DNA of 64,000 nucleotides from Pavona decussata (lineage: Eukaryota): assembly GCA_977016875.1 (NCBI GenBank), contig CDRNST010000066.1:1364001-1428000 (forward strand), in the 5' to 3' direction. Below the pieces are notes generated by a model. That model did no database searches. It was given only the letters and a program-made list of their open reading frames with translations, and was not told the DNA's origin. Shown here piece by piece: positions 16,957 to 59,800 of the stretch (positions are counted from its first letter, which is position 1; each line of letters begins with the position of its first letter). Made by a program: the position numbers and the translations under genes.

Positions 16957-19085
16957 TTGCTTGTTCACACCAGTCCTTTACTGCCCCAACGTGCTCTAGC
17001 TCGTCTACGATTGTTATCAAATCCTTAAAACCATCAGCACCGTCAGCTGCTGTCAAGACCTCGCAATGATTTCCTCTGTGAAGCTTCTTGGACGTCAAGT
17101 ACTCTCCACATGGTGGAGTTACTGATTGGGTGAAATCCAGTTTCCTTGCAATGTTCAAGGCATTGGTTAATGATGGTGCACCCGGCCACTGTGCGGACGA
17201 CATTAGGCATAACAAGTTCTTCCCCACTCTCAAGTTTAAGGGTGCGAGTACCGTAAGCTACATCTTGTTAGTAATATGGCCACATGGTAAACTCCAAGAA
17301 ATGGTCTAGTTGGCGCTGATCCACACGGATTCTGTGTCGCGGTAATCTTTCAACAGGTATTCCGGGTCCTTCAATCTTCGCTTCAGCTCTTGCCTTCTTT
17401 ATTTGCCTTTCAGAGAGATCTTCAAATGGCTTGTGGATTTCTTTAAGCTCTTTTTTGTGAATCGATCGGCGTAGCATCAGCAAGGCTGTCAATGCAGGAA
17501 TTGAAAACTTGCACTGGCCCTCCAGTATTTTCTTCAGTTAATCCAAATTCTTCCATTTCCATGCTGTCGTCAAATGCAAGCAAGGCTGAAGGCGTCCAAG
17601 TTTCATCAGGGTTGCATCCCCGCCTCAAAACGCAGGGTGTTATGGTTGAGTACATTGAAGACTGGAGTTGAGCTGATGCTGCTTCTTTGCAAGGCCTTAA
17701 AATGAAAATTAATTTCAATTGAGAGCCAGCAAAGTTCAAACAACGGCATTTTTAGTGTACTTATTTCCAAAAAATAGACGGGCGGTGTCCCTTTTCGGTT
17801 GCATGTGCTTGCTGTAAAAAACATTAGTGCATCAAAAGGGAGTGAATTAGTTTAAATATAGACTTTACTACCTTGACCATCTCCAACTCGAAACTCAATC
17901 GATTTAAAATGTGTAATTTGGAGGGGGTCGACCGTCTTTGTGTGCTTTATTTTACGTTATGTCTTCCCCCCTTTAATAAGAGATATGGACATCCTATGAA
18001 GATCGCTTTTCCAGTATTTACGGGCTCAAATAACCTCTTTAATGAAGAAGTTGTTCTCTTTCACTTTCGAAGCTTTATTATGCACAGTTGCATTGATAGC
18101 CAATTGATATTTGGCCTGGCAAATGCAAGGACCTACAATCTTGGACAGAATAAAAAAAAAATTCTAAATCAATCAGTATGAATTTGCGTGTAAAGCAAAA
18201 CGCGCCATGTTTCAATCACCGAAAAAAAGGGGGGGCTGGTCTTAATTTTTTATTTCAATTGTCCAAGATCGTAGCTATTAATATGTCTGTTGAGGCTAAG
18301 CAGATACTGAAAATGCCCCTCAATTTAATGCAATAGCCATTTTCTTAACGCCACAGCCATTTGTACAGAGACCGGCGTTAATGGGGCTTCACTATGGAGT
18401 AAAAGATTCTTGACACAATGGCGGGGCCGTCCCTCATGTAGTTATTGTGCTTTATCTTCTAACGAATATCACCAAATATGGCAATGTTCATCTTATTGCG
18501 GAGGTTGCCTTCCTGTAACAAATTGATTCAAACTAATCAAATAAGATTAAACTCATTATAAGCCAGGCTACATTAATAAATATTGAGATTTTAATAGGTG
18601 CGCGCGCTGAGTTTTTTTCTCTACGAGAGGTTAGAAACAATGTTATAGTCTGATTTTTCTCTATATACCTACATTTGTTGGCAGATATTTTACAAAATAA
18701 CTCACCTCGCGCCTGGATTGGACATTTGTACAGATTCCTTTTCCGAAGTTGCAGGGAAGATCCAAGGCATTTCTTTCACAGAGGCATTGTGTTGGTTGCG
18801 GCAGTTGATGCAAATAACTTATTTGATCAAAAAGAAAGTCAAAACTACTCAAGGAAGGTTCTACAACTGACTTCGGACTTATTTCTCATGCTCGGGCTAC
18901 TGCGCTACGCAGTCTAAGAAGCATATGTGAAAATACCACATGAACATTTTTTATCGGGGGATGTTTCAGTACAATTTCGTTTTGATACACAATGTGGGGG
19001 GGGGGGGGGGGAGAGTGGGGGTGCCCTTAACCCCCCGAAGGCGATAAAATTGGACAATTTTCATTATATTCACAGAGACCTCCTA

Positions 19086-23516: not shown

Positions 23517-23682
23517 TTAATTACTTTAAAGACTGAGAAACCAGATCTGCATGGTCACTGAGAAGTAAACAAATAGATTAAAATTAATTGCTGATGGTAG
23601 CAATATAGAGTTTAAAAGTGTGAATTTATTTCTAAACATAACTTACCTAGTAGTATCTCCTTCCTTAGACATGGTAAATTTT

Positions 23683-24720
23683 TCGTTAAAAAACGAAAAG
23701 CAAGAAATGACAGTAATCTTATGACAGCTTAGTGTGCTATGTTTACATGGTTGTCACATTGTGTCGGTTAATTTGCAGCAGTACATGTAAATGAGCAAAA
23801 CACATCTGCTCCACTACTTCAACTCAAAAGGAGAAGGCTTCGGTTTGCTTCACCTAACATTGTAAGATATGAAAGAAAAACTGGCAAGAAACAGCAAAAA
23901 GATATTTACGTAGTCGCCACTACGTGAAACACACAGACTACCCACTGTAGCAGAAGGACTACGAACAACGCGGAAAACTTGCATGCTAATGATCATGCGC
24001 AGTTTGACTTGATCCAGGTGCCGACTCATGTCCAACTGTAGCCGTAGTCAGCAGTCGTCCTATCTTAAGTCCTGGCTTGTGGGTTCTGGTAGAACAGAGA
24101 ACCTGGAAATTTTATTCAAAACAACAAAATTTCTCACACTTGTGGTTAGATTGCTGGGAACCGCCTTTGCAACTCTTTCTTCTCAGCTTTCAGTTTACCG
24201 ACTTGTTTCCCAACGTCATAAGAAACCTTAAGATCGAGGGTGTTCCTCTTAAACTGCAAACATCAACCAGCAGTTTACAGTTCAGAGTTAGCCCCATGTA
24301 CATAATCCCGGCTTGAGATGAGGGTCTCTTTTCAGCTATGTATCATGGGATACTCTCAAGAAAGCAAGATGGTGCCTGCACGGAGGAAAGTATCGAGGGA
24401 ACTTTTGTTGCTTAAAATGTGTCTTTATTCGACACAACCACCACAGGACCTTTTTTCATTCCTCGCGATAGCGTGTCAAGGAACGTAAATTTGATGTTTA
24501 AATGTGGCTTTATAGTTTCGAAACTGGTGAAAAACTGCCGTAGTTCACTTTCTTAGAGCAGCCTGAACCTGAACCTTAAACGTCAAACAAAACACCTGTT
24601 GGTGCTAAGAGTACACCTAGCGTTTCAAGTTGTTTCCAGTGAGAAGATAAACTATTGGAAAGGTCGCAGAAACGATTGAAAAAACGGACAAGAGGAAAAC
24701 GACCCACAGAAGTCTTGGTC
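23683..24720. repeat. Unclassified interspersed repeat, copy A (B at 36134-37105, C at 40620-41340)
   Basis: Long colinear identity with B and C, e.g. caaacatcaaccagcagtttacagttcagagt..gccccatgtacataatcc is in all three. Confidence 0.85.
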
Positions 24721-27543: not shown

Positions 27544-27601
27544 CCTCGTTAATGATAACTAAAATATTATCTCTCTGTTTCTCTACACACAACCACAACT
27601 A

Positions 27602-27869
27602 CAATCGTGGACAAAACGGTTAAGAAAACGTACCCTTCCAAGCGTTTTGACAAGTAAACAATCGAACGACCATATTTTCCCCGCCCCCCTCCCCCCAACT
27701 CAATATTGTTTGGTGGGTCACGAACAGTTTCACGGCAATCAGCATTTCCCAAATCAACATTGTATAGGGGGAGGGAGAAGGAACTTGTAGAAATTCGAGG
27801 GGAGGAATAGGAAATAATTGTTTTTGGTGGGCCGCGTTCAGATTTCTTAACAAGAATTGTCCACGATTG
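27602..27869 (+). mobile_element. Tc1/mariner-type MITE, copy 1
   Basis: TIR caatcgtggacaa / ttgtccacgattg, with TA at 27600-27601 and 27870-27871. Confidence 0.85.
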
Positions 27870-28061
27870 TAAAACAGACAAATTGTTAAAAAACAGAGAT
27901 CTAACCCTGCACAGAAACCCGGTCGGGTGATATGTAATTGGACATTGGGTACTAATTAACGTCCAGGAATATTGCTGTTAATTGGTTCTAATTCGCGGAG
28001 ATAATGGTTGTAATTTGTAACGCAAAGAGATGCATTATCTCATCACCTCGCCAGTTTTACA

Positions 28062-29047
28062 ATGGTTTTTACAGGCGCCATTGACTCGCAAAGAAAGGCG
28101 TATATCGCATATTTGGCGCGGCAGAAGATATTACCAGCCGTAGAGATACTGAAACAATGCAACATTTCACTTGCATCGGTATACAGAATTCGAGACGAGT
28201 TCATATCCGTGAAACAGACCGGTCCCGTTTATACGCGCAGGAGGACCTCCGAGCAAGTTGTGCGCGCGTGACCAGAGAAAAATTATTCGCTGTTTGCGAG
28301 CGCTACGAAAAGAGGAAGGACATTTTTCTTCCAGTAGGATTGTCCGAGGATGACATGCGTCAACGTGTTCACTTTGCAAAGAACATAAAAAATAACCACT
28401 CTCGGGATATTTGGTGCAATACGGTTGCTTTCTATTTGGATGGTGTCAGTTTCTATTATAACAGAAATCTGGCGGATCAAGCTAGAACGCCACAAGGGAG
28501 AGTATGGAGGAGAGCGTGTGAAGGGCTTATTCAGGGATGCTCAGCTAAAGGATCCAAAGAGGGGAGTGGAGGTCGCGTTTTAAGATTAATGGTGGCCATT
28601 AGTTACGGTAAAGGAGTAATTGAGTGTCATGCATATGATAATCTGGACAGCCGTTCATTTGCCTCTTTTGTTAATGGAAAATTTGATTCTATGTTTGCAA
28701 GAGCAGACAAGAATGGTTCTCGCATGTTTGTACAACTCAACGCACCAAACCAGAATTCTGCTCTTGTTAGAAGAGTACTTAAAATAAAAAGGGCAAAACA
28801 ATTATATATTCCGCCTCGCAGCCGTGACATAGATGCTATCGAGAATTTCTTTAATCTTGTTTAAAAAAAGCTGAGAAAACAGGCTGTAGAATTAAACATT
28901 ACGCGTGAGACATTCGATGAATTTTCATCACGTGTAATTAGAACAATGTACAACTTTCCATCAGAGGTAATCGACAAGATTATAGACACTATGGGTGGCC
29001 GTATGGATGCCATTATTACTGGAAAAGGACAATGCACTAAGTATTAA
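28062..29047 (+). pseudogene. Tc1-like (DD34E spacing) transposase, disrupted
   Basis: HTH ILKQCNISLASVYRI and a GPPSKL.ARDQRKII motif are present. The catalytic region reads FYLDGVSF, FVQ(L)NAP (second Asp replaced) and PPRSRDIDAIENFF, with 34 residues before the Glu. The C-terminus is MGGRMDAIITGKGQCTKY*. It has frameshifts and a stop at 28862. Confidence 0.85.
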
Positions 29048-29478
29048 TACTTGTATTCAATATACATTTATTATTCTTGGAACTCAGGACACGAAAGCAG
29101 TCTTTTCTGACCAAGTAATAATCAGAAGATTATGTCACGCTAGTATTTTATTGTGTTACATAGTACAGCGTGCGTGACAGGCATGTCACAAACGTCAACA
29201 AATACATTCTACAAGAGAAAATGTGTCCATTTCTTGCCGTAACATCTACCTTTCTTCCGTTTGTTTACATATAACTCTTAATAACGCAAAATACTTTAAT
29301 TGCATACGATTAACAAGAAGACATTTAGCACTTTCAACGATTAACAACGATTAACAGCAGTTTTGTATTAAAAGAAATGACTATCTATTCTTTTCAAGAG
29401 CATTCGGTGTTAACCGTTGAAAACCTGTGTTAATCGTTGTTTTATTTCACCATTGCCTTGAAACTGTCAAGTTAATCG

Positions 29479-30113
29479 TTACATGCCGAATTCTAGGTCT
29501 GGCTCGCCACAAATAAGCCGGCTTACAAAACATCGTGCACATGGCGGGATTTCTCTTTGCCGCTCCCGTGGGATTTGAAAATTGAAATAAAAAATTCTCC
29601 AACGCACATTCATCATTTCCGTTTCACGTTCATCTACTAAGCCATTTTTAATATACATGAGCGGACGCTTTCCTGTGCAGAAGATTGGAGTATCAGCAGT
29701 CAGGGAAATATCCTTTGCAAAATGAGTTTTTGGTGCGCGCTGAAATAGTTGTGATGCTTGTTGGTAAAGTGAACTGAAATCCCAAATTCCTTCAATAAAA
29801 ATTCCTTCGCCGATAACCAGCGTTCATTACGATCCAGTTTCAGCACGAGATGATAATGTTCACCACCGTTCTTATGTTTCTCCCGACAGCAACACCACTG
29901 AACAACTCTCCCTTTGCCTTGCAATTGAGAAAATGCGTACACAACTGCTGAGGCGAAATTTTCCCAGGTTGGAAATTTAGTAATATCTGCCTGGCTATAT
30001 GTCACCAAATAAACACTGCGTCGGTCACTTCTAAGGAGAGAATCTTCGGATAACGATTTACCCGGCTCCTCTGAACTAGATTCATCACTTTCATAGCTTT
30101 TCAAAAGATCCAT
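29479..30113 (-). pseudogene. Rolling-circle Rep (HUH endonuclease + SF3 helicase, NS1/CRESS-like) with an internal deletion
   Basis: 30113-29737 has motif I VYLVTY, motif II EHYHLVLKL and the start of motif III NYFSA. The frame then shifts into an open frame missing from the ORF track (29736-29479): APKTHFAKDISLTADTPIFCTGK...DERETEMMNVRWRIFYF...PPCARCF*. This resembles SF3 motif B'/C and the arginine finger. Confidence 0.7.
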
Positions 30114-30350
30114 AGTGTTGGTGGTTACTAACTTCACTGAACAATGGCAAAACAAGTGGCCAGAACGATACGCGAGTTGCTTATATCACGACAGGCATGA
30201 TCTGTTTTTGGCTTGTTACATCTCTGCTAAATAAAACACTGACGTTAACGTACGCGTAACTTAGAGAACACCGACCGGTGTGTCTATCCACGGCTCCCGG
30301 GAAGTTCAAACTTTTTGAGTTCTGAGGAAATGGAAAAAAATTGGCTGACA

Positions 30351-30633
30351 CAATCGTGGACAAAACGGTTAAGAAAACGTACCCTTCCAAGCGTTTTGAC
30401 AAGTAAACAATCGAACGACCATATTTTCCCCACCCCCCTCCCCCCTCCCCCCAACTCAATGTTGTTTGGTGGGTCACGAATAGTTTCACGGCAATCAGCA
30501 TTTCCCAAATCAACATTGTATAGGGGGAGGGGGGGAGGGAGAAGGAACTTGTAGAAATTCGAGGGGAGGAATAGGAAATAATTGTTTTTGGTGGGCCGCG
30601 TTCAGATTTCTTAACGAGAATTGTCCACGATTG
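30351..30633 (+). mobile_element. Tc1/mariner-type MITE, copy 2 (near-identical to copy 1, same orientation)
   Basis: It has the same TIRs and differs mainly in homopolymer tracts. Flanks are CA on the left and TA on the right. Confidence 0.85.
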
Positions 30634-31382
30634 TAGGCAAAGTTCATCAACTAACAGGAAATGGTTGATGTGAGAATTCTTGGTTTTCAGCTACGTGCAC
30701 GTCATGCAAGTAAAACAATGAAATCATCAACCATTCAATGGTGATGTCACTTGAAAACCAACATATACACACGATTAAATAGTAATTCTCCACAATGCAA
30801 TGTTTCACGTACCGCAGGTTTCCTCCGGAAATGCTGGATAGTTAAAAGAATATATATTTTCATCTTAGTCAGGGCCTTTACTCAATGCGTCAAAACCCAT
30901 AACATGGCTTACAACTTAACTAGTGTCAAGCTTAATTTGTCACCATGAGAACAATAGAACCTACTTTACAGAATACCACATTGTTTGGTATTTTGATTTG
31001 AGACTCACCCGCAATTGGTTTGAGTAGTTCGCGTCAGATCATGGCTGACATTTACGTTGCTTGATGTCCGCGATGCAAAAAGTCTTTTCGGACAAGAAAT
31101 GCATTAAAAATTGCATTTCAGCAAAAAGCACCCTGGAAACGAGTTGCCATAAAACATCACATTTTCATTTTGTGAGAAGCAAGCCCCAACAATGAGACCT
31201 CGACTTCTAAAGAACAGTGACCAGCATTTGCAGTGGCTGGCTGATGTTGTCGAATGTATAAACTCTGCACACAAACCCTACGTTCCAGGTTAGTATAGGA
31301 TGTTGGGCTAGATTGCAGAATACCCTAACTTAAAAAACTGCTACCGCAGTCCCGCAGTCGTCACACTACACATGAATATACC

Positions 31383-34300
31383 TGGTGTCCACAAGACTTC
31401 AATACAAACAGGAAATGTGTTTATTTGTCCGTCAAACTCCACTTCGAATTTACCAAAAAGACCATCTCGTACAACACGAGAAAAACAACAAGATCTGATC
31501 CGACTAAAAAACATGACATTTTATAGCGAAAATACATGAGAAAATTATTTGCATGTCCCTAGGGCAAAACAAAAAATATTTCATTCCTAATGAGAAAAGT
31601 CTTGGCATTCTTTCTTTTGTCCATACCTCCCCCCTTGATATGACGTAGCATATCAACGAACATTTAACCTAGTAAGAGGAGGAACTGCAAAAAAAATGCT
31701 CCAAGTAGGAATGTCACTAATCCTTTCATAATTCAATCTTTGTTCCGCAACAAAGTCTTTTAATTTAGCATCGTTCTTAAGTAAGTTTCAAGTGACATAA
31801 CTTTGAAATAGGCCTTGTGTGATCTGGTTCTTCCCAACTTGAACTTTTGCGACTCTAACATGCCCATCTTGGCCAGGGTAAAGTTCAATCACTCTTCCAA
31901 GAGGCCAGTGACCTTGTGGTGTGTTGGGTGAAATTACTAAAACTACGTCCCCAACTTTTAGATCTTGCTTGACTTCAGTCCACTTTCTCCTGACATTAGA
32001 GGGCCGTATACACGACCGAAAAAATTGTAACGGTTCGGATAACAAAACGAACGGCTCTGACAAAATTTGACGTGGAAACGGTACTTGAACTGTTCCAGTC
32101 TTATCCGCTCCGTTCCTTAAAAGGTCGATAGGTGGCTATGGACCCGTTTTGGAATGGAACCGATAAAAAACGGTTCTCTACCCACCTTTTGTTTTCTTTT
32201 CAATGTGTAAACGCTCTCCCTTTTTCGGTACCGTTATGCTATGTTTTTTCTGAGCTTATAGTACTCCACGTTAGTTGTTTAGCATACCATTGATCGTCAG
32301 AGTAAGTGCTGTATGCAAGATCAAACCAAACGCCTGTTCTTGGAATTTGCCACAAGCTCCGTTCGATTGTGAAGTGCGACACAAGGGCTGTTTATAGGAG
32401 AACCGTAAGCCTTGTTTTTCTCCTAATTCGGTACATTCTCTCAGAAGCATTCCTTTGAAGAATCACTCGCGCTGTCAAACATGAATTTCGTGTTCTCTTT
32501 TTCAGAAGAAACTAGAAAAGTGCTTGTAAATCTATGATAGTCGGAGACACGCACAGTGTACTGTATATGTAAGCGGATATGAACAACTAATCGAAGCAGT
32601 TTTGTTTAATTATTGCGGGCTCCATCGAAGAAAACGGTCTAGTACCCGTTCCAAGGGGCTCTCAAGTACGGTGCCTTTTTCTGTCAGGTACATTACAGAA
32701 TTTGCACGTGTAAACGGGACATTTTGTATGGAACCGGTACTTGTTTCTAACCGAGCCGTTCCTTCTCTTTTAACGTGTAAACGGGCCTTTAAGCTTGGAA
32801 GCCACTCACTGTGCCAGAAGTGTCTCACTAATTCTCTCTTCTCCATCTTTTCTTTGGGCTGAAGGTGGTTTTGTCCACTGAATCTGGGGCGAATTGTCCA
32901 CCAATCTGACCAATTAAGAAATGGTTTGGTGTTAATGGTACATCGTCATCGGGACTTGCAGACTGATAGGTTAGAGGTCTTGAATTCAAAAGTGCCTCTG
33001 CTCCGGTAAATGCAGTCATTAATTCTTCGTCAGTGATGTCTGCGTTTCCTAAAATTGCACGCACCGCCCATTTCGCTGCCTTGATCATTGACTCATGTAC
33101 GCCACCAAAATGTGGTGCTGCTGGGGGATTGAAGTGCCAGGTAACTCCCTGATTCGTTGTGGAGGCTTTGATTCTGTCTTGGTCAAGCACTTCAACCAGT
33201 TGGCGCAGCTCTTTGTTTGCCTTAACAAAATTTCCACCATTGTCAGATAACATTTCTCGAGGAAGACCCCTCCGATTGGCCATTCTGTAAAAGGCATTCA
33301 TGAACGAATCTGTGTCAAGACCATAGGCCATCTCAAGATGAACTGCTCTCTTTGCGAGACAGGTGAACAAACACAAGTAACGTTTCTGCCTTTGTGTTCC
33401 TCTGCCTTGAATGGTGATAAAAGGGCCTCCGAAATCTACTTCCGTCTGGGCAAATGCTCGCAGTGATAATGTTAGTCTTATCTGTGGTAGAGGGGCCATA
33501 ACTTGCTCTGCTGCTTTAGCTTTTCGTCATTGCACTCCTTCTCCCATTCTCTTATTTCTTCGCGACCAGATATTATCGAAAACCGGGTTGATAAAGCCGC
33601 CAATGTTTGATTAGTTCCACTTGCATGCTTCCCTTTCTCGGGATAATGCTTGACAATTAGCTTTGTCACTTGATTCTTGCGGGGAAAGGATTATAGCAAA
33701 TCGGGTGTCTTCTGATAAGAACTCTGCATATCTCAGTCGACCTTCACTCCTGATCTGGCCCTCTTCGTCAAGTCTTGGTTTTAATCCAAGCAATTTGCTG
33801 TTCTTTAGTAACTCCCTTTGGCGAAGAAGCGCTGTGTACTTGTCTGGAAAAGCTTCTTGTTGTGCGCTTTTAATCGCTTGAGTTTCTGCGTCCTCCATTT
33901 CTCCTGGCTTTAGCTCTCCACTCTCTCTTTCGTGGAGTCTGCAGTTGTTTATAAAACGATAGACCCATGCTTGAACTCTGATAAAGTTTTGCCAACTTAA
34001 AAATCGATTTGGAATCAAACGCCATAAATGCGTATTCTCCTTTAGTGAAATCATTGTTCGTTCCTCGACATCATCATTTGCTTGTTTGGGGAATTCTCGG
34101 TCATTCCTCTTGGTCTCCATTGATTTCGTTTCCTGATCTACGTTGACACGGTTTATTGGCCATTCTGCTTCGTCGTTTCCAAGGAATTCAGGTCCGTTCC
34201 ACCACTTCTCGCAGTTAGCTAGTTCCGACACCTTTAAGCCTCTGTAACCAGGTCAGCTGGATTTTCTTTGGTTGGAACAAATCGCCATTGCTGAGGATCG

Positions 34301-34715
34301 GTCAAACACTGAATCTCTTCCACTCGATTTGCGACAAACGGTTTGAACGACCGCCTTCTTCCTCTAATCCACCACATTACATTCATGCTATCAAACCAGA
34401 AGGTTAATTGATTCAAGGCACTGTCTAAGGCTTTGGAAACAGAATCTGACATTCTTAACCCGAGAACTGCTGCCATCAGTTCCAATCTGAGAATACTTGT
34501 CGTGGAGAATGGCGCGACTCTAGTCTTAGCAGTTACTAGCCATCTGGATACCAATCCACTCTTACAACATACTCTTGAGCAGATGACAGCTCCATACCCA
34601 TCCTGCGATGCATCAACAAATACATGCAGTGTCTCTGAAAGCACTTCCTTGTCCTGTCCTAAGCGCAGACACCTCGGAACTTTGATTTCCAGTAAATCTC
34701 TTAACTCACTGAGAC
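31383..34715 (-). mobile_element. BEL/Pao LTR retrotransposon, 3' half (RNase H, integrase, 3' LTR)
   Basis: RNase H: LHVFVDASQDGYG...LELMAA...FWFDSMNV...VPTKENPAD (34234..34700). Integrase: VDFGGPF...AVHLE...LSDNGGNF...PHFGGVHE (32828..33499). C-terminus [15 protein letters not shown]. The PPT aaggggggagg is at 31625-31636, before a putative LTR at ~31383-31623. Confidence 0.9.
32000..32787. mobile_element. TIR MITE (PIF/Harbinger-like) inserted in the BEL integrase tail
   Basis: Ends are agggccgtatacacg / cgtgtaaacgggcct at a TTA/TAA-like site. Removal approximately restores WLPSLNVRRKW. Confidence 0.7.
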
Positions 34716-36133
34716 AGCTTTGATGAATACAAATTTGAACGAAGGGGTTACAGGCAGGATGTATTAGGCAGTAACAAATGTAGAAGTACTTAAAATTGAA
34801 AGGCAAGCTGTTTAAAAACAACTCGATGTAGTGAAATTAAAGAAACTCAGCAACTGGGTTTCTAAATGAATGGTTATTTTAACATTAAAATTGAGTGGGG
34901 TTGTCACAGCGAAAACCCGGGAGTAAGAACGTGCAGTTTGGGAACTTAGTAATTATTGTCCATTTCTGTGAGAAAAAAAAAAAAGATGTTATTTTGAACG
35001 CTTTGCATTTTCCTATTACTGAGAGCTTTTTGTATTAAACATTAGTTTTATGAAAGAAGAACCTGATTTAAACTAGAAGGTTTAGACGTTGTTATTTAAA
35101 GAGTGTCTTTTAAACAGGCTGTAATTGAGGTTCTTACTCCCAGGATTGTAGTGTATATTGTTAACAGAACTCAATGATGCACAGCAGGTCACTTATGCAA
35201 GCCAAGACGGCATTCCTGAAAGAAAGAAAAGACAAAGAGTTGACACTATTATTGTTGACTGGTGATCAAGCACGAGGTGCTACATAATCAATGTTTGCTG
35301 CGAGGGGCCACCTTGAATGTGGGATACCGGAATGCTGTAACCTGTCAAGAAATTGTCTGTGACGTGTTTGCCAACAACAAGGTATTTGTTTGATACGATT
35401 AAAGATATTTTGGTATGAACTGATAAAGAGTGGTGTTGTTGATCCATCAAAGTGTAAGTGCTGGAAACTGTTGTGTGCCACCTAAAGTTCAATTTCTTGT
35501 GCGGAGAAGGACAAGCTTTTGAGAAGTGACTACCCAGAGGTGGATCGCACACATCGCCCCATGTCTGATGCTGAAAGTCAGGAGAGAATGATTCTCTGAA
35601 AGCTGTGCTGCTCTGCAACGAGACAGATGTCATCTTCTTGAGAAATTATAACCAATGGTGATGCAAGTGGACAAAGTACTTGTACAAGAAATATAAATGA
35701 AAACTTGAGGAGCAGTTTTGAGATATATTGTAAACATTTTAAAAAGGATACACTGAGAACTAGACCACGCTTGTTGGATTAGTTGTTCATACATAACACT
35801 TGGGTGTTCTAGTTTTAAAGGCCCCGTTGCATGTTGGGGGGGCCATGTGCTTTTGGGATTATAGCAAATTAAAACCAAAATAAGAGGTTTCTTTAAGATG
35901 TTATACTTTTGCTCTGGTAACCTGCTATGTCAAGATTTTTATGTCGTAGATTTTCATCAATAAATATTCCAAGCAATTTGACAGCGGAAACATGTTGTAT
36001 TGGAACATAATCAATCAAGAGCTCAAGTGGGTTCGACAAAGTACTCAAGTGTTGTCTGGAGCCACATCAATTCAGTTTTAGCAGGGTTCAAAGTAAGTTT
36101 ATTGGAAATAAGTCATTTGTTTAAGTTACTTTG

Positions 36134-37105
36134 CGTTAAAAAACGAAAAACAAGAAATGACAGTAATCTTACGACAGCTTAGTGTGCTATGTTTACATGG
36201 TCGTCACATTGTGTCAGGTAATTCGCGGGGATACATGTAATTGAACAAAACACATCTGCCCCCTACTTTAACTCAAAAGGAGAAGGCTTCGGTTTACTTC
36301 ACCTAACATTGTAACATATGAAAGAAAAACTGGCAAGAAACAGCAAAGAAATATTTACGTAGTCGCCAGTATGTGAAACACACAGACTACTCCCTGTAGC
36401 AGAAGGACTACGAACAACGCGGGACAGTTGCATGCTAATGATCATGCGCAGTTTGACTCGATCCAGGCACCGACTCATGTCCAACCGTAGCCGTAGTCCG
36501 CAGTCGTCCTATCTTAAAGTCCTGGCTTGTGGGTTCTGGTAGAACACAGAACCTGGAAATTTTATTCACAACAACAAAATTTCATACAAACACATCACAG
36601 ACATGCTGTTAATTTAATAGATTATTTGAAGTTTTGCAGACAGTTAAAGATGTTGAGTTTGGCCAAAATTGGAAAATGTCATTAAATTTTTATACATTCT
36701 TCATCAACAACGGCCCATCTGATTTACAGGAAGCCAAAATTTCAAACGATCAGAACCGCCTTTGCAACTTTTTCTTCTCAGCTTTCAGTTTACCGACTTG
36801 TTAAGATCCTTTTTATCGGCAAACATCAACCAGCAGTTTACAGTTCAGAGTTAGCCCCATGTACATAATCCCGGCTTAAGATTAAGGGTTTCTTTTTACC
36901 TATGTATGATGGGGTACTTGCAGGAAAGCAAGATGGTGGGTGCACGGAGGAAAGGATCAAGAAAGTTTTGCTTTAAATTTGTCTTTATTTGACACAACCA
37001 CCAAAGGACCTCTTTTCATTTTTGGAGATAACGTTGTAAGGAACGTAAATTTGATGCTTAAATGTCGGTTTATGTTTGAAAACTAGTAAAAAAACTTTGC
37101 TGTAT
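36134..37105. repeat. Unclassified interspersed repeat, copy B
   Basis: It matches 23683-24540 and 40620-41160. Confidence 0.85.
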
Positions 37106-40619: not shown

Positions 40620-41340
40620 CAAAGACATGCTGTAAATTCAATAGATTTGTTAAGTTTTGAAGACAGCTGAAGAGTTTGAATTTGGTCAAAATTTGAAAAT
40701 GTCTTTAAATTCATACATTCTTCATCAACATCCGCCCATCTGATTTACAGGAAACCAAGATTTGAAAAGATCAGAACCGCCTATGCAACTCTTTCTTCTC
40801 AGCTTTCAGTTTGCTGATTTGTTGCCCAGTGTCATAAGAGACCTTAGGATAGAGGGTGTTCCTCTTAACCTGCAAACATCAACCAGCAGTTTACAGTTCA
40901 GAGTAAAGCCCCATGTACATAATCCGGGCTTAGGGTTAAGGGTTACTTTTTACCTGTGTATCATGGGATACTTGCAAGAAAGCAAGATGTGGCTGCACCC
41001 GAGAAAAGTATCAAGGTAGCTGTTGTTGCTTTGAATTTGTCGTTATTCGACACAACCACTTAAGGAACTCTTTTCATTTCTTGAGATAACGTTCAAAGGA
41101 ATGTAAATTGGATGTTTAAATGTCGCTATACGTTTGAAAACTAGTAAAAAACTTTGCCGTATTTCACTCACCTATAGACAGTGATGTTGAAACCAAAACC
41201 TTAAACGTTTAACAAAACACCTGTTTGTGCTAAGAGTACACCTAGCGATTCAAGTCGTATTCCAGTGAGAAGAGTAACTATTGGAAATGGCGGAGAAAGT
41301 ATTGAAAAAGGGTCAAGAGGAAAAATACCAACAGAAGTCG
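40620..41340. repeat. Unclassified interspersed repeat, copy C
   Basis: It matches 36600-37100 and 24160-24715. Confidence 0.85.
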
Positions 41341-54500: not shown

Positions 54501-56432
54501 TGTCATGCCATCATGTGATCATAGGAAAAAAGCCTCATTTATTAAAAAGAATTAATAAAATATATAGATAACAATTTTAAATAAAAACTATAAAATGTAA
54601 TTTTTGGCACAAAACTCACCAATCCTTTATGAATACATGTATACGCATCATTACATTTTTGTCTTATAATGCTTTTCAACAGCATTAAAAGTAGTAGCTA
54701 CTTACCAGAAATGTTCTCATAATCATCATCATAATTTTCTTCATCTCCAGAAGAAAGCATGTCCTCCTCAGGCAAACTCTTTTTTGCCTTTTGTCTTTGT
54801 CGCTCTTTTTGTGTTTCCATTTCTTGCTCCGTTCTGTCAAGATCCTGCTTCTTTCTTAAAAGCTTTTTCTCTTTTTCCTCCACTTCTCTGTCACGTTCAC
54901 TCACAGCAATTACAGACTGGTTCAGTTCCGAAAGCTGGCCAAGGATGTTCATGTCTCTCTCATCTAAGGCCTTCTTTTTTTGCAGCTTTTCTTTCTTTTT
55001 TTCCTCCTTTTCTTTTTCAGCCTCCATTTTCTCTTGTGGGCTTTTTGCCTTAGGGGAAACACCAGCTGGACTCTTCTTGGCTTTCTTTTTTCCTGCAGTG
55101 GATTTGTTTTCTTTTTTACCCGAGCCACTTCTTCTCTTCCCCATGGCATCCATTGCAGTTTTTGTTTTAGTCAACTGCTCTTTATCATCTGTTAAGAATA
55201 AAAAACAGGAGGAAGGATAACCCTGTCCCTCAGATAAATCAATACAGTAGAACCTCTATTTATTTCAGTGTCTCTAACCCGCAGTATTCGATACCTCTAT
55301 TAAACGGTTAACCTCTATTAAGCAGCCAGTTTTCAAAGTCCCGAGGGTGGCTGCCTAATAGAGGTCCGACTGTTTATTCAAATAAATCAATATTTAGAGC
55401 AGTAAATCAATATCCAGTAGACAGAGCAGATTTTTTATGTTTTTAAATGCTATATTCACTTGATAGCAATTTATCCAATAGCCAGAATTATAAGCCTTTG
55501 AACTACTGAGCCTGGATCAATAATAATAATAATAATATTAATAACTCCATTTGATGTATTCTTTTACTTGGTCGAACTAAGTCACAAGAAATCAAAGCTA
55601 ATTATTGAGGTCTTGACTTCAGAAAGACTACTTACATGTACAATGCATGATTCTTTTTTAAATATATATAAATGCCAAATTCTTTTAGTTAATTTAGCTT
55701 CAATTTAGTTGCCTTTGTGTAGTCGTATGTCTCACCAGTCATCTGTAAATGCATGCAGTAATTAAAATTAAGCTTATGTTTTCTTTGTGACTTTTTAGAT
55801 CAGCTGCACTCACCACTTTCACTGAGCACCACACACGGGTAATATTTCTTGTCCTGATACATGGCTATAGTATTATTGTCATCCCTTTTAAGTCCCGTTT
55901 CGTCCACAATGAACTTGATGTTGTCTTCGATAAATTGAACCAGAAAGTATCCTGAAAGAGGGAACAATTTTGTAACTCGCCTCCAAAATACACAAAATAA
56001 CAGTTAACATAAAAATATGGCTCGCGTCCTGGCAGCTAGCCCCCTTGACTTCTTCATGAAAGAGTTAATTGGGTTTTCCTATATATTAGTCTCACAAGAA
56101 CTACAGGTCAAGTTCATATATTAAAAAATGCATTTAAACAAAAGGCTTAAATATACCAACAGAAAAGCCAATATTCAGAAGAAGAAGAAGAAGAAGAGGA
56201 AGATAATTTTATTTTACTAGGGCGACTCTTACTGTTTCAATTAATCAGGCGGACTTAAAACTTGTCTACGATATATTCCGAGTACGATCTAGCCATGTTC
56301 GCGTGCAACCATGCATGCATTGTGCAATATATTTCAGGCAACCTTTGGCATTTTAACTTATAACAACTTACTTTTCTCTGCATATCTGCATGAGGGGGTT
56401 GTCTTCCTTTTGTCTTTCTTTGCGGTGCTCAT
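51560..56432 (-). CDS. BEN-domain protein of the CACTA element; exons 56432-56372, 55951-55814, 55188-54706, 52866-52517, 51758-51560 (last exon not securely located)
   Basis: All four junctions are GT-AG, in phase (1,1,1,0), and I saw no stops. The protein has an N-terminal YFLVQF...YYPCVVL domain, a K/E-rich coiled coil and a CxxC + coiled coil. The C-terminus GVYL...TATACLLLSCFYSEQELIGKSLGGKNRKASVDTDILESIL resembles BEN. Confidence 0.75.
52008..52380. mobile_element. MITE in a BEN-gene intron
   Basis: TIR gctccgtcaattccaagcc / ggcttggaattgacagagc. Confidence 0.75.
52920..54426 (-). mobile_element. Kolobok-like element (deletion derivative) in a BEN-gene intron
   Basis: TIR ggccgcggtgga / tccaccgcggcc with TSD tcaa/ttaa. 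ORF 53501..54019 (GNRIVNI...H..VCPC.G...EIERKG.A..I.F.C) resembles the N-terminus of Kolobok-Hydra-type transposases. Confidence 0.75.
55245..55372. mobile_element. pogo/Tc1-type MITE in a BEN-gene intron
   Basis: Ends are TA|cagtagaacctctatt ... aatagaggtccgactg. Confidence 0.7.
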
Positions 56433-56863: not shown

Positions 56864-59800
56864 ATGAAGAGACCATGCCATCCACGGGCGGGAGCTTTTC
56901 AATTTATACAAGTGAACCATCGCAGAGTTCTTTGAGCCAGACGGACGTGCCTTCCCAAACGGATTGGAGTGAGACTTCTTCGATAACTGCGAGGAAAATT
57001 ATTTCAAGCACAGCGAATTGTCTAATGACAGCGACTCAAGCAACCCTTTTGATGTTCCCGCAGATCCTAAACTTTCAAGATCAGAACAAGACAGAATACA
57101 TGCAGAAGAAGAAGAAGGTGTCGAAGATTACCTTTTAGCTTTCGATTCTGCGGAACAAACAGAGGACGAAAACACTTATAGAAAAGATGAGGCTTCAGAA
57201 GATCTTCCTTTGTATAACGGAGCACCCATCACTGTAGCTGTTAGCATGTTGTTAATCGTTACATACGCCGTTCGACACTGCCTAACTGGACTCGCTATTG
57301 TTGATTTGCTGACGCTTGTGAGTCTACACTGTGCAATTCCAAATCAGTGCGCATCTTCAATGAAGCTGTTAAAGAAATTTTTCATGAAATTGAAAAATCC
57401 TATCCAGTTTCACTACTACTGCACTTTTTGCATGGAGTATCAAGGATTGGCTATAGCAGATAACAAACTTTGTAAAAACAAGAGCTGCTTGAAGGACCTA
57501 ACCAAGAAAGACATGTCCTCATACTTCATCATCATTCCACTTATTTGCCAGCTCAGGGACCTTATTCAAAGTAAGTGACCTAATGATTACACAGGTTGTT
57601 TTGAAAGGGACACTATCATGGGGATTTTTCTGCATTTACGTAGTCAATGGAAAATAACCTACTGTAGGTTAAAATTAAATTTACCTTGTTGAAAAAAATT
57701 GTCTTGTTAGAAATTAAAAATTAAGTGAAATAAAAAAAAATTAACTGCAACATTTGCATTGTATATTTATACAAAAAAGCTGGCTATGGTGTATTGTGTT
57801 GTTCCAGAATATATCCAGACTCCCCCAGCAGAAGAAATTGGAAATTCCTTAGGGGGGGGGGGGGGGGTCCTCAAAGACCAAAAAATTTTAAAGAAATGTA
57901 TGGAGTTTAATTGGAATTTCCAGAGGGGTGGAGGTTCTTATAAAATATCCCTTCTGTGGGGGAGGTATGGATAAATGGAACTACATATTAAAATTTCAGT
58001 GTTTTAATTGGTTTAGACGCAATGGCAAACGTGGTAGGTGCATGTGTCTTTATCCCAATGTTTGTAGCCACTTTTGAGGTGTTTCTTAGGGTGTTTTTAA
58101 TCAAACCATTATTACACTCACATGCATTAGAAACTCTGTGCTATGTACCTGGATGTCTATCTTCTCAGTATCCAATGCGCACACATGGAATAATTGTTAA
58201 TTGGATTTTTTTTTTTTACTTTTTCAGAGACTGGAATTCTTGATCTTCTTAAATATCCAGTTAGTAGAAGCAAGATCAATCCAGATGCCATTGAAGATAT
58301 TCAGGATGGGTTATTGTACAAAAAGCATTTTGGAAGTGATGGCTTTTTTAAAGGTGTCTCAGATGAAAAAAGGAAAGCTGAAATCCATATAAGTTTTCAA
58401 CTTTTTACTGATGGTGTAGCCCTGTTTAGGTCTTCAAAATACAGTATTTGGCCTGTATATTTGGTTGTAAATGAGCTTCCACCAAACTGCAGGTATGCAA
58501 TGCATTCTCCTAAAACCTATATGTTAGGGAATCCATCATCATCATCATCATCACCTTCATCAGTGGCATCACCATCATTTAATGAACTTGGGAAAAAGCA
58601 TAAACTACAAATCAGTCCTTAGAACAGCAGATATGAACATGCTGGATATAGACGTATAGAACAGTCACTAATAATATTTTATAAATGCTACAAGGAGAAC
58701 GGCCCAAGTTATTTGGCCAACCTATTTAAACCACGAATCACTCCTTTAACAACCTTAGAAATAGTGGACTTAACGTCATTCAAAATTAATATAATAGCAG
58801 ATTTCGTCATAACTCTTATTCATTTGTCATCTCTCGGATCTGGAACAAACCGCCGCCTACTGTTAAAGCGGCCCCAAACTCATCATATCATCATCATCAT
58901 TTGTAAGGTTGATGAAAAGATATAAAAGTATGGTTTGTGAACATCTCTGATTTTGCACCCACAATCATAATATCAAATGGTCAATCTGCTGACTAGGAGT
59001 TGTACACTGTATGTCCCTGCTGGGGGGGAGTTGGCTGAAATCCAAAATGTGAAAAAGTTGAAAAGAATGAGGAACTAAATTATTTATTTTATTTCACTTG
59101 GTGTTGCATCATTTGCCCTCTTCTTGACAGTTGCATTGTTTGTGTTATTTTACTAGATTTGCAAGATCCAACTGCATTTTCCTTGGACTGTGGTTTGGAT
59201 ACAGCAAGCCAGATTTCCTGACATTTTTGCAGCCATTCAGCAAAGAATTCTAAGACATTTACTCCGAAGGTGTTTTTTTTTATGCATGGAAATTCCATTA
59301 TGATATGCTTTTTTCTTGCCATTTTCTGGGTATCTGTAATATTATTTTAATCTCCTTAATGTTACGATGAGATTGTTTTTTGTGTTTTGTACTGAAGTGA
59401 ATCTGTTAGTGTGTATATCCATTTTTACATTTTTGTGCACAATACAACTTTCCCACATACCTTGCAAAATTTTAATCTATTACAAGCACTATAAGTAGTG
59501 TGTTGGTTGAATGTGCCCAAATGAATTTAAAGAAAATCAAAAGTTGATTCCTAATCTACAGAAGTTGTTTAAGTGGTATAACCTGATTTCTTTTCAATTC
59601 TTTTTAACTGCGCAGGGGGCCAAAAGCCACCCGGGCAGTTCATGCTTTTTTTTTTTGCTTTGAGTAAGACTGAGCAAGCGTCGTGACTTCATGTTTAGTT
59701 TTAAGCTCAATGAGCTTCTTATTATTGTTATTTCTTATGAATGATAATTCCAAAAGGTAATGACGGAAATGGCATCAAAGTGAGAGGAATTTTGTTGAGT

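Follow-up and report, generated by a model that had tools for sequence, protein, structure and literature searches.

The two-gene unit analyzed here was found in a stretch of 64,000 nucleotides from Pavona decussata (NCBI GenBank assembly GCA_977016875.1, contig CDRNST010000066.1, positions 1,364,001 to 1,428,000 of the forward strand), which is referred to as the window and whose numbering is used throughout. A decayed copy spans positions 27602 to 30633 and pairs a Tc1-type transposase gene with a gene for a Rep protein of the HUH endonuclease plus superfamily 3 (SF3) helicase family, in the layout M - transposase -> <- Rep - M, where M is an end module with a central hairpin. That such a two-gene mobile element is real can be stated with high confidence. 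The copy in the window is probably a decayed, non-autonomous unit of a two-gene family in which the transposase would paste the unit into the chromosome and Rep would amplify it. Integration by the Tc1 enzyme appears well supported by the sequence context of the ends, and Rep-driven amplification is put forward as a tentative part of the model. Cnidarian genomes and assemblies of coral and other marine holobionts were found to contain members of the family. The features of the window copy are listed below, with the strand given for the genes.

27600-27601: left flanking TA, preceded by C; the C-TA / TA-G context recurs at the outer ends of other loci
27602-27869: left M module, with inverted ends CAATCGTGGACAA and a central hairpin
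27919-27963: left arm of an inverted repeat described in the first-pass annotation, ~100-140 bp upstream of the transposase start
28062-29047, plus strand: Tc1-type (DD34E family) transposase, broken, in three open pieces
29306-29480: cluster of six ~10-bp iterons (ACGATTAACA type), origin-like and located where the 3' ends of both genes face each other
29479-30113, minus strand: Rep (HUH endonuclease and SF3 helicase family), broken; motifs I and II survive, as does the C-terminus of the helicase
30241-30278: right arm of the same inverted repeat, upstream of the Rep start
30351-30633: right M module, a direct repeat of the left M (97-99% identity)
30634-30635: right flanking TA, followed by G

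The gene pair in the window and in diverged lineages

Convergent transposase and Rep genes were detected in five diverged lineages, namely the window lineage and those represented by the following loci.

L008: M followed by Rep and a DDE_3 gene that converges on it
L011/L012: arrays with a period of ~4150 bp, whose units share 99.7-99.9% identity; TA was read at one end of an array
L015 and L016: transposase and Rep both intact (365 and 480 amino acids)
L027 (NCBI GCA_044670265.1): M - Rep - transposase - M

M modules were located on both sides of the pair in the window copy, in L016 (Ms 99.6% identical) and in L027 (96%). The most complete picture was obtained from L016, a Tara metagenome scaffold that reads flank - TA - M - transposase - Rep - M - TA - flank. 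Its intact unit of 3.7 kb contains the two genes and an open reading frame (ORF) of 75 amino acids, with no capsid-sized ORF. Protein identities to L016 ranged from 45 to 56% for the transposase and from 46 to 63% for Rep, and the ranking of the lineages was concordant for both genes. Comparison of L015 with L016 yielded ratios of nonsynonymous to synonymous divergence (dN/dS) of 0.33 for the transposase (dS 0.20) and 0.18 for Rep (dS 0.22). The dN/dS values, the near-equal dS and the concordant ranking of identities together indicate that both genes have been under purifying selection and have diverged together.

These data also bear on the simplest alternative, a chance nesting of an unrelated Tc1 element and endogenous Rep fragments that was later amplified as a satellite. 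Such an origin would suit a locus at which both genes are broken and whose unit is tandemly repeated elsewhere. Nevertheless, the same oriented pair recurs together with M in five lineages at 45-63% protein identity, and two copies carry both ORFs intact with equal dS. Chance nesting is refuted by these observations and is hardly credible as an explanation.

The pieces of the broken transposase and Rep genes were searched separately, and their frames were never joined. The transposase pieces of the window matched Pfam HTH_23 (1.3e-4) and DDE_3 (8.6e-6), both under the Pfam cut-offs, and the longest of them has 165 relatives at E<=1e-10. Many relatives are intact proteins of 360-366 amino acids with HTH_Tnp_Tc3_2 and DDE_3 domains, which confirmed that the plus-strand gene had rightly been read as a Tc1 transposase in the first-pass annotation, a reading made from the sequence letters. 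For the intact relative P0173, HTH_23, HTH_Tnp_Tc3_2 and DDE_3 were all detected above the Pfam cut-offs, and its alignment to the catalytic domain of Sleeping Beauty (SB100X, 5cr4; E 9e-9) matched the three acidic residues with DD34E spacing. The paired helix-turn-helix (HTH) motifs and DD34E-type DDE domain that define Tc1/mariner transposases are therefore found in an intact relative, and the window copy is sub-threshold and broken. The closest intact transposase is that of L013/L014 (361 amino acids, 81% identical). Relative to the L014 gene, to which it is 91% identical in nucleotide sequence, the window copy has suffered a frameshifting deletion of ~0.1 kb and a frameshift of 1 nt, contains one premature stop and has gained two in-frame insertions of 3 nt, and its catalytic triad is incomplete.

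The Rep gene is represented by two pieces. The N-terminal piece (minus strand, 29703-30113) comprises 137 open codons and gave weak Pfam matches to REP_ORF2-G2P (1.9e-4) and Gemini_AL1 (1.9e-3). Comparison with the structure of the geminivirus Rep catalytic domain (1l2m) aligned motifs I and II at E=0.03. HMMER searches with this piece retrieved 957 clusters of relatives at E<=1e-3, 455 of which also passed E<=1e-10 (clusters at 50% identity); two relatives are assigned in the cluster records to Sanderia malayensis and Actinostola sp. A second frame (minus strand, 29482-29823) aligned to the last ~75 residues of relatives 460-480 amino acids long (E 4e-20 and 9e-14), a stretch that contains motif C of the helicase as well as the pair of Cys residues at the C-terminus; a Pfam search with this C-terminal piece alone returned no match. 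Both the HUH motifs I and II and an SF3-like C-terminus in an additional frame had been proposed at first pass, and both assignments held. The Rep lesion is a single internal deletion of ~0.8 kb accompanied by a change of frame, through which motif III and the Walker A and B motifs were lost. Together with the frameshifts and the stop in the transposase, it bears out the earlier view that this copy is dead. The 137-codon piece recurs unchanged on dozens of large contigs, which indicates that the deletion is older than the spread of the window subfamily.

The properties of the intact protein were deduced from its relatives. In an alignment of 20 Rep sequences, both His residues of motif II and the Tyr of motif III were invariant, and the motif III Lys and the Gly and Lys of Walker A were at least 90% conserved. 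Pfam searches across the family detected REP_ORF2-G2P in 13 of 14 sequences, PPV_E1_C in 8, Gemini_AL1 in 6 and Parvo_NS1 in 5. A sequence-profile search of the PDB with the Rep family returned only E1, at E 0.08. An AlphaFold model of the full-length relative P0031 (predicted local distance difference test score, pLDDT, 82) matched Rep68 of adeno-associated virus 2 (AAV2) over its full length at E 1e-11. The helicase part of the model matched papillomavirus E1 (template modeling score, TM, 0.64), AAV Rep40, B19 NS1, SV40 LTag and the Rep of a CRESS virus (one that encodes Rep on a circular genome of single-stranded DNA), Vientovirus. As judged from this model, Rep is predicted to consist of an HUH domain that is connected through a helical linker domain to an SF3 helicase. 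In L007 (6001-12707), the Rep gene is split by a nested insertion of ~5.7 kb with other ORFs, one of which gave a faint Pox_A32 match.

The first-pass annotation had proposed a hybrid Tc1-Rep element and was ready to abandon it if Rep homologues proved unlinked to Tc1 transposases elsewhere, if the copy boundaries did not enclose both genes or if the ORF had no HUH or SF3 profile match. On all three points the opposite was found: Rep homologues are tied to a convergent Tc1-type transposase in the five lineages, the M ends enclose both genes, and family-wide profile matches are joined by the full-length fold match to Rep68.

End modules, target sites and iterons

The two M modules of the window copy are ~275 bp long. 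Each possesses its own perfect inverted ends of 13-16 nt, beginning CAATCGTGGACAA, and resembles a miniature inverted-repeat transposable element (MITE) in being an imperfect palindrome, with a hairpin formed by a central C-run and G-run. Folded as single-stranded DNA, M reached -46.3 kcal/mol (z = -5.05 versus shuffles); an Rfam scan of the window gave no match. The end sequence and the arms of the central hairpin are kept across lineages, and M adjoins Rep in L007, L008, L010, L016 and L027. The possibility that M is an unrelated MITE flanking the genes by chance was ruled out, as M adjoins Rep across lineages that are 41-60% identical in Rep.

The outer ends of the paired M modules form inverted repeats of 13-16 nt, both in the window copy and in L016. 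Directly outside them, the window copy shows the context C-TA on the left and TA-G on the right. TA flanks in a CTAG context were observed at the 13 ends that were read. The C-TA / TA-G context was seen at both ends of the window copy, of L016 and of L010 and at four left and five right distinct flanks of the window lineage. L022 has TA on both sides, and TA stands at every array end that was read. In L016 and L010, TA is absent from the inner junctions of M. On the basis of this pattern, the flanking TA may be one copy of a candidate target-site duplication (TSD) in a CTAG target. DDE-type integration, as suggested at first pass, gains support from these flanks. The position of the ends had to be revised, however. 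They had been placed at the CCGGTCGG inverted repeats (27919-27963 and 30241-30278), but all copies extend to the outer M ends (27602 and 30633 in the window copy). The CCGGTCGG repeats are slightly above chance in the window (2/500 shuffles) and are absent from the same place in intact relatives; the left arm may be a promoter-proximal motif.

One further MITE-like element was encountered in the window. It is a solo element of 136 bp (18136-18271) with M-like inverted ends and the same C-TA / TA-G flanks, and may have been produced, as a solo M would be, by the same transposase family.

The six iterons between the genes are distributed three per strand, in two inverted groups that flank a spacer of ~50 nt. 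The sequence AACGRTTAAC has seven matches in the 64-kb window, five of which fall within 29306-29480, where 0.19 would be expected. The other two (55303-55312 and 57251-57260) are isolated, and nothing similar to Rep or to the transposase lies near them. L015 and L016 retain the arrangement of the cluster, and L008 and L012 have iteron variants specific to their lineages. Such lineage-specific iterons would be the pattern expected for an initiator binding site that evolves with its own protein.

Tandem arrays and the proposed role of Rep

Units 97-98% identical to the window copy were identified in two ENA assemblies, mostly in tandem arrays. Two assemblies have array flanks in common (L020 and L026). 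Periods of the 2873-bp type lie beyond the limit of Tandem Repeats Finder (L002), and arrays were delineated by BLAST self-comparison. Arrays of the window lineage show a period of 2873 bp at no fewer than 8 distinct loci and start and stop exactly at outer M ends, with many running into contig ends. Tandem arrays occur in two lineages, the window lineage and L011/L012. In the window, a single unit is present together with the second M, and one other single-unit copy (L022) has ends as in the window copy. A contig that consists entirely of array (L023, ENA ERZ25073751 ctg96058, 18.4 kb) has a coverage of ~300x, compared with 30-46x for host contigs of the same assembly; from this coverage, far more units exist than were assembled. 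The contig L012 (ENA ERZ25067548 ctg96211_4x_c, 13.7 kb) is composed solely of Rep-plus-transposase units of ~4.15 kb, and its length corresponds to 3.3 units. The suffix _c of its name was taken as the circular flag of the assembler, which could reflect a real circle or a cycle in the assembly.

A mechanism is proposed that would connect the two genes, the M modules and the arrays. The transposase would act on a left end and a right end that belong to different Ms, and everything between the chosen ends would be pasted into a CTAG site. Depending on the number of units (X) between these ends, the product would be a solo M, an M-X-M copy or an array of the form (M-X)n-M. Rep would bind the iterons, perhaps act at M as well, and make a copy of the unit that leaves the chromosome. 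Because M-X-M is terminally redundant, a unit-length circle could be released, and amplification of this circle by Rep through rolling-circle replication would give rise to head-to-tail concatemers that could serve as substrates for the transposase. The mechanism would explain the terminally redundant M-X-M structure and the coexistence of solo M elements, single units and arrays. A rolling-hairpin mode of replication, which had been offered as an option in the first-pass annotation, is not favored since the M modules are always in direct orientation.

Several observations weigh against an active role of Rep in this scheme or against an obligatory pairing of the genes. No replication intermediate, circle, single-stranded DNA or extrachromosomal form was seen in the data, which consist of assembled contigs, and no nick-site motif common to the M loops or the iteron spacers was recognized. 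Rep profile matches to named families are mostly below curated cut-offs, with no score above the gathering threshold for Viral_Rep, Gemini_AL1 or Parvo_NS1. The intact transposase of L013/L014 (5539-9466) lies behind a full M and has no Rep, in place of which ~2 kb of unrelated sequence is found, and the second M is reduced to its first 33 bp. Two loci, L006 and L009, contain Rep remnants without a transposase within 5-8 kb. Protein-based look-ups over-sample arrays, and every array examined is made of units broken in the same way throughout. The uniform damage implies that the encoded proteins did not build those arrays in cis. The window copy and the arrays of its lineage can have moved or expanded only via proteins acting in trans or through host recombination.

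An alternative is that the element is a Tc1 transposon in which Rep is a selected passenger or helper, that cut-and-paste acts on the outer M ends without any replication by Rep, and that the arrays form when the direct Ms cross over unequally or cause replication slippage. Other repeat-flanked transposons are known to turn into macrosatellites by such recombination. The uniformly broken units of all arrays fit this explanation, the direct 270-bp repeats provide an obvious substrate for recombination, array ends at M are equally expected, and insertion is fully accounted for by the Tc1 features. Even so, a passenger Rep offers no role for a conserved HUH center, a complete SF3 helicase and co-varying iterons under purifying selection. 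Arrays also recur in two lineages that are only ~45% identical in protein, and the ~300x coverage of the all-array contig is not readily accommodated. On this evidence, a passenger Rep is judged rather unlikely.

The fold and architecture that Rep shares with viral initiators raise a further alternative, in which the element would be an integrated CRESS-like or parvovirus-like single-stranded DNA virus that captured a Tc1 transposase as its integrase and whose capsid gene resides elsewhere or in free forms. Many full-length Rep relatives are indeed found on contigs of only 1.8-2.4 kb, and hairpin modules at both ends recall parvoviral termini. Against a provirus stand the intact 3.7-kb unit, which leaves no place for a capsid-sized ORF, and the M modules, which are always direct and not arranged in flip and flop orientations. 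Moreover, L010 (7340-9215) contains a Rep-only derivative of 1876 bp between M and a partial M with TA flanks, and short Rep contigs accordingly need not be viruses. This derivative suggests that some of the ~2-kb Rep-only metagenome contigs are derived from transposons. A proviral origin is considered very improbable.

The preferred reading remains a two-gene element that is inserted by its transposase. That it extends to a new class of animal element, in which Rep, by way of the duplicated M modules or the iteron origin, copies and amplifies the unit as rolling-circle concatemers and the Tc1 transposase reinserts these at CTAG, is a bolder proposal that is advanced here with caution. If correct, a single element would yield MITEs, single copies and macrosatellites with kilobase units, and it would represent a living intermediate between DNA transposons and small single-stranded DNA replicons.

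Three other repeat features of the window lie apart from the element. Remnants of a Pao/BEL-type long terminal repeat (LTR) retrotransposon were located at 32828-34821 on the minus strand (Peptidase_A17, 2e-22, and a weak rve integrase match) and mark the window as DNA of an animal. A dispersed repeat of ~0.5-0.9 kb is present in three copies that are 62-94% identical (23680-24633, 36130-37072 and 40710-41258), and a tandem repeat with a 54-bp period and copies 90-92% identical occupies positions 1-196.

Comparison with known systems

The element shares with DD34E members of Tc1/mariner, such as Sleeping Beauty (5cr4), the paired HTH and DDE_3 domains, the DD34E spacing, the short inverted ends and the TA flanks. 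It differs from them in having a conserved second gene for a protein of 480 amino acids, so that the description of a transposon encoding only a transposase does not apply. In place of simple terminal inverted repeats (TIRs), it is bounded by two complete hairpin modules that share one orientation, and it contains an internal iteron cluster and is often found in tandem arrays. A strict CTAG target with duplication of the TA is known from IS630. Even under the conservative interpretation that excludes replication by Rep, it is unusual for a Tc1 family to have a second gene that is conserved and end modules that form hairpins.

With the viral HUH and SF3 initiators (AAV Rep68, parvovirus NS1 and Vientovirus Rep, and the helicases of E1 and SV40 LTag), the Rep protein has the domain order and fold in common. 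The conserved HUH, Tyr-x-x-Lys and Walker A columns are likewise shared, and the iterons lie in inverted clusters as at viral origins. The succession of HUH motifs I-III followed by an SF3 domain with Walker A, Walker B and motif C was recovered in the family alignment, not in the window copy. Differences from the viral systems are the weak sequence matches, the lack of a capsid gene, the chromosomal location, the Tc1 ends and the DDE transposase partner; no nonanucleotide stem-loop was recognized in the element.

Combinations of a viral-type replication module with an integrase or transposase exist in Teratorn (piggyBac and herpesvirus) and in Polintons/Mavericks, and in Nicotiana geminivirus-related DNA with origin and Rep is present in head-to-tail chromosomal arrays. 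The enzymes and sizes of these systems are different, and to our knowledge none of them pairs Tc1 with an HUH-SF3 Rep in a unit of 3.5-4.2 kb. If the two genes cooperate, the element would be a compact natural case of a cut-and-paste transposon joined to a viral replication module, with either side as the acquirer. It would then bear on the exchange of modules between small DNA viruses and transposons, on the escape of Tc1 from the copy-number limits of non-replicative transposition, and on the origin of satellites with kilobase units. The element provides a genomic context for a large Rep clade (957 clusters at 50% identity), most of which lacks annotation. It also calls for caution in that short Rep-only metagenome contigs may be transposon derivatives rather than viruses.

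Helitrons and Replitrons are, like the present element, eukaryotic transposons that encode an HUH Rep (PMC10288648). In Helitrons, a two-tyrosine Rep forms a fusion with a helicase of the SF1B (Pif1-like) type, and a helicase is absent from Replitrons, which have short direct terminal repeats; both lack a DDE transposase, TIRs and TSDs, and Rep itself is the transposase (PMC10288648). A Helitron identity was ruled out by the SF3 fold of the helicase and the presence of TIRs and TA flanks, and a Replitron identity by the presence of both a helicase and a DDE transposase.

The first-pass annotation had known of no description of such a pairing. In our literature search, which did not cover Repbase, no description of a Tc1-plus-Rep element, of M modules or of their arrays was found, and the statement stands to this extent; the geminivirus-like repeat of Tuber melanosporum (Liu et al. 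2011, PMC3198968) sets a partial precedent. Within its TIRs of 37 bp, this truffle repeat contains transposase ORFs next to a Rep-like one; it is known as a reconstruction only, with interrupted ORFs, no TSD and an unspecified type of transposase (PMC3198968). Compared by description only, M modules, iterons and arrays are not described for the truffle repeat. In a cnidarian, the Hydra element DENSOV_HM carries a helicase of the PPV_E1_C type (Liu et al. 2011, PMC3198968). The truffle repeat and the Hydra element are the nearest precedents of the element described here.

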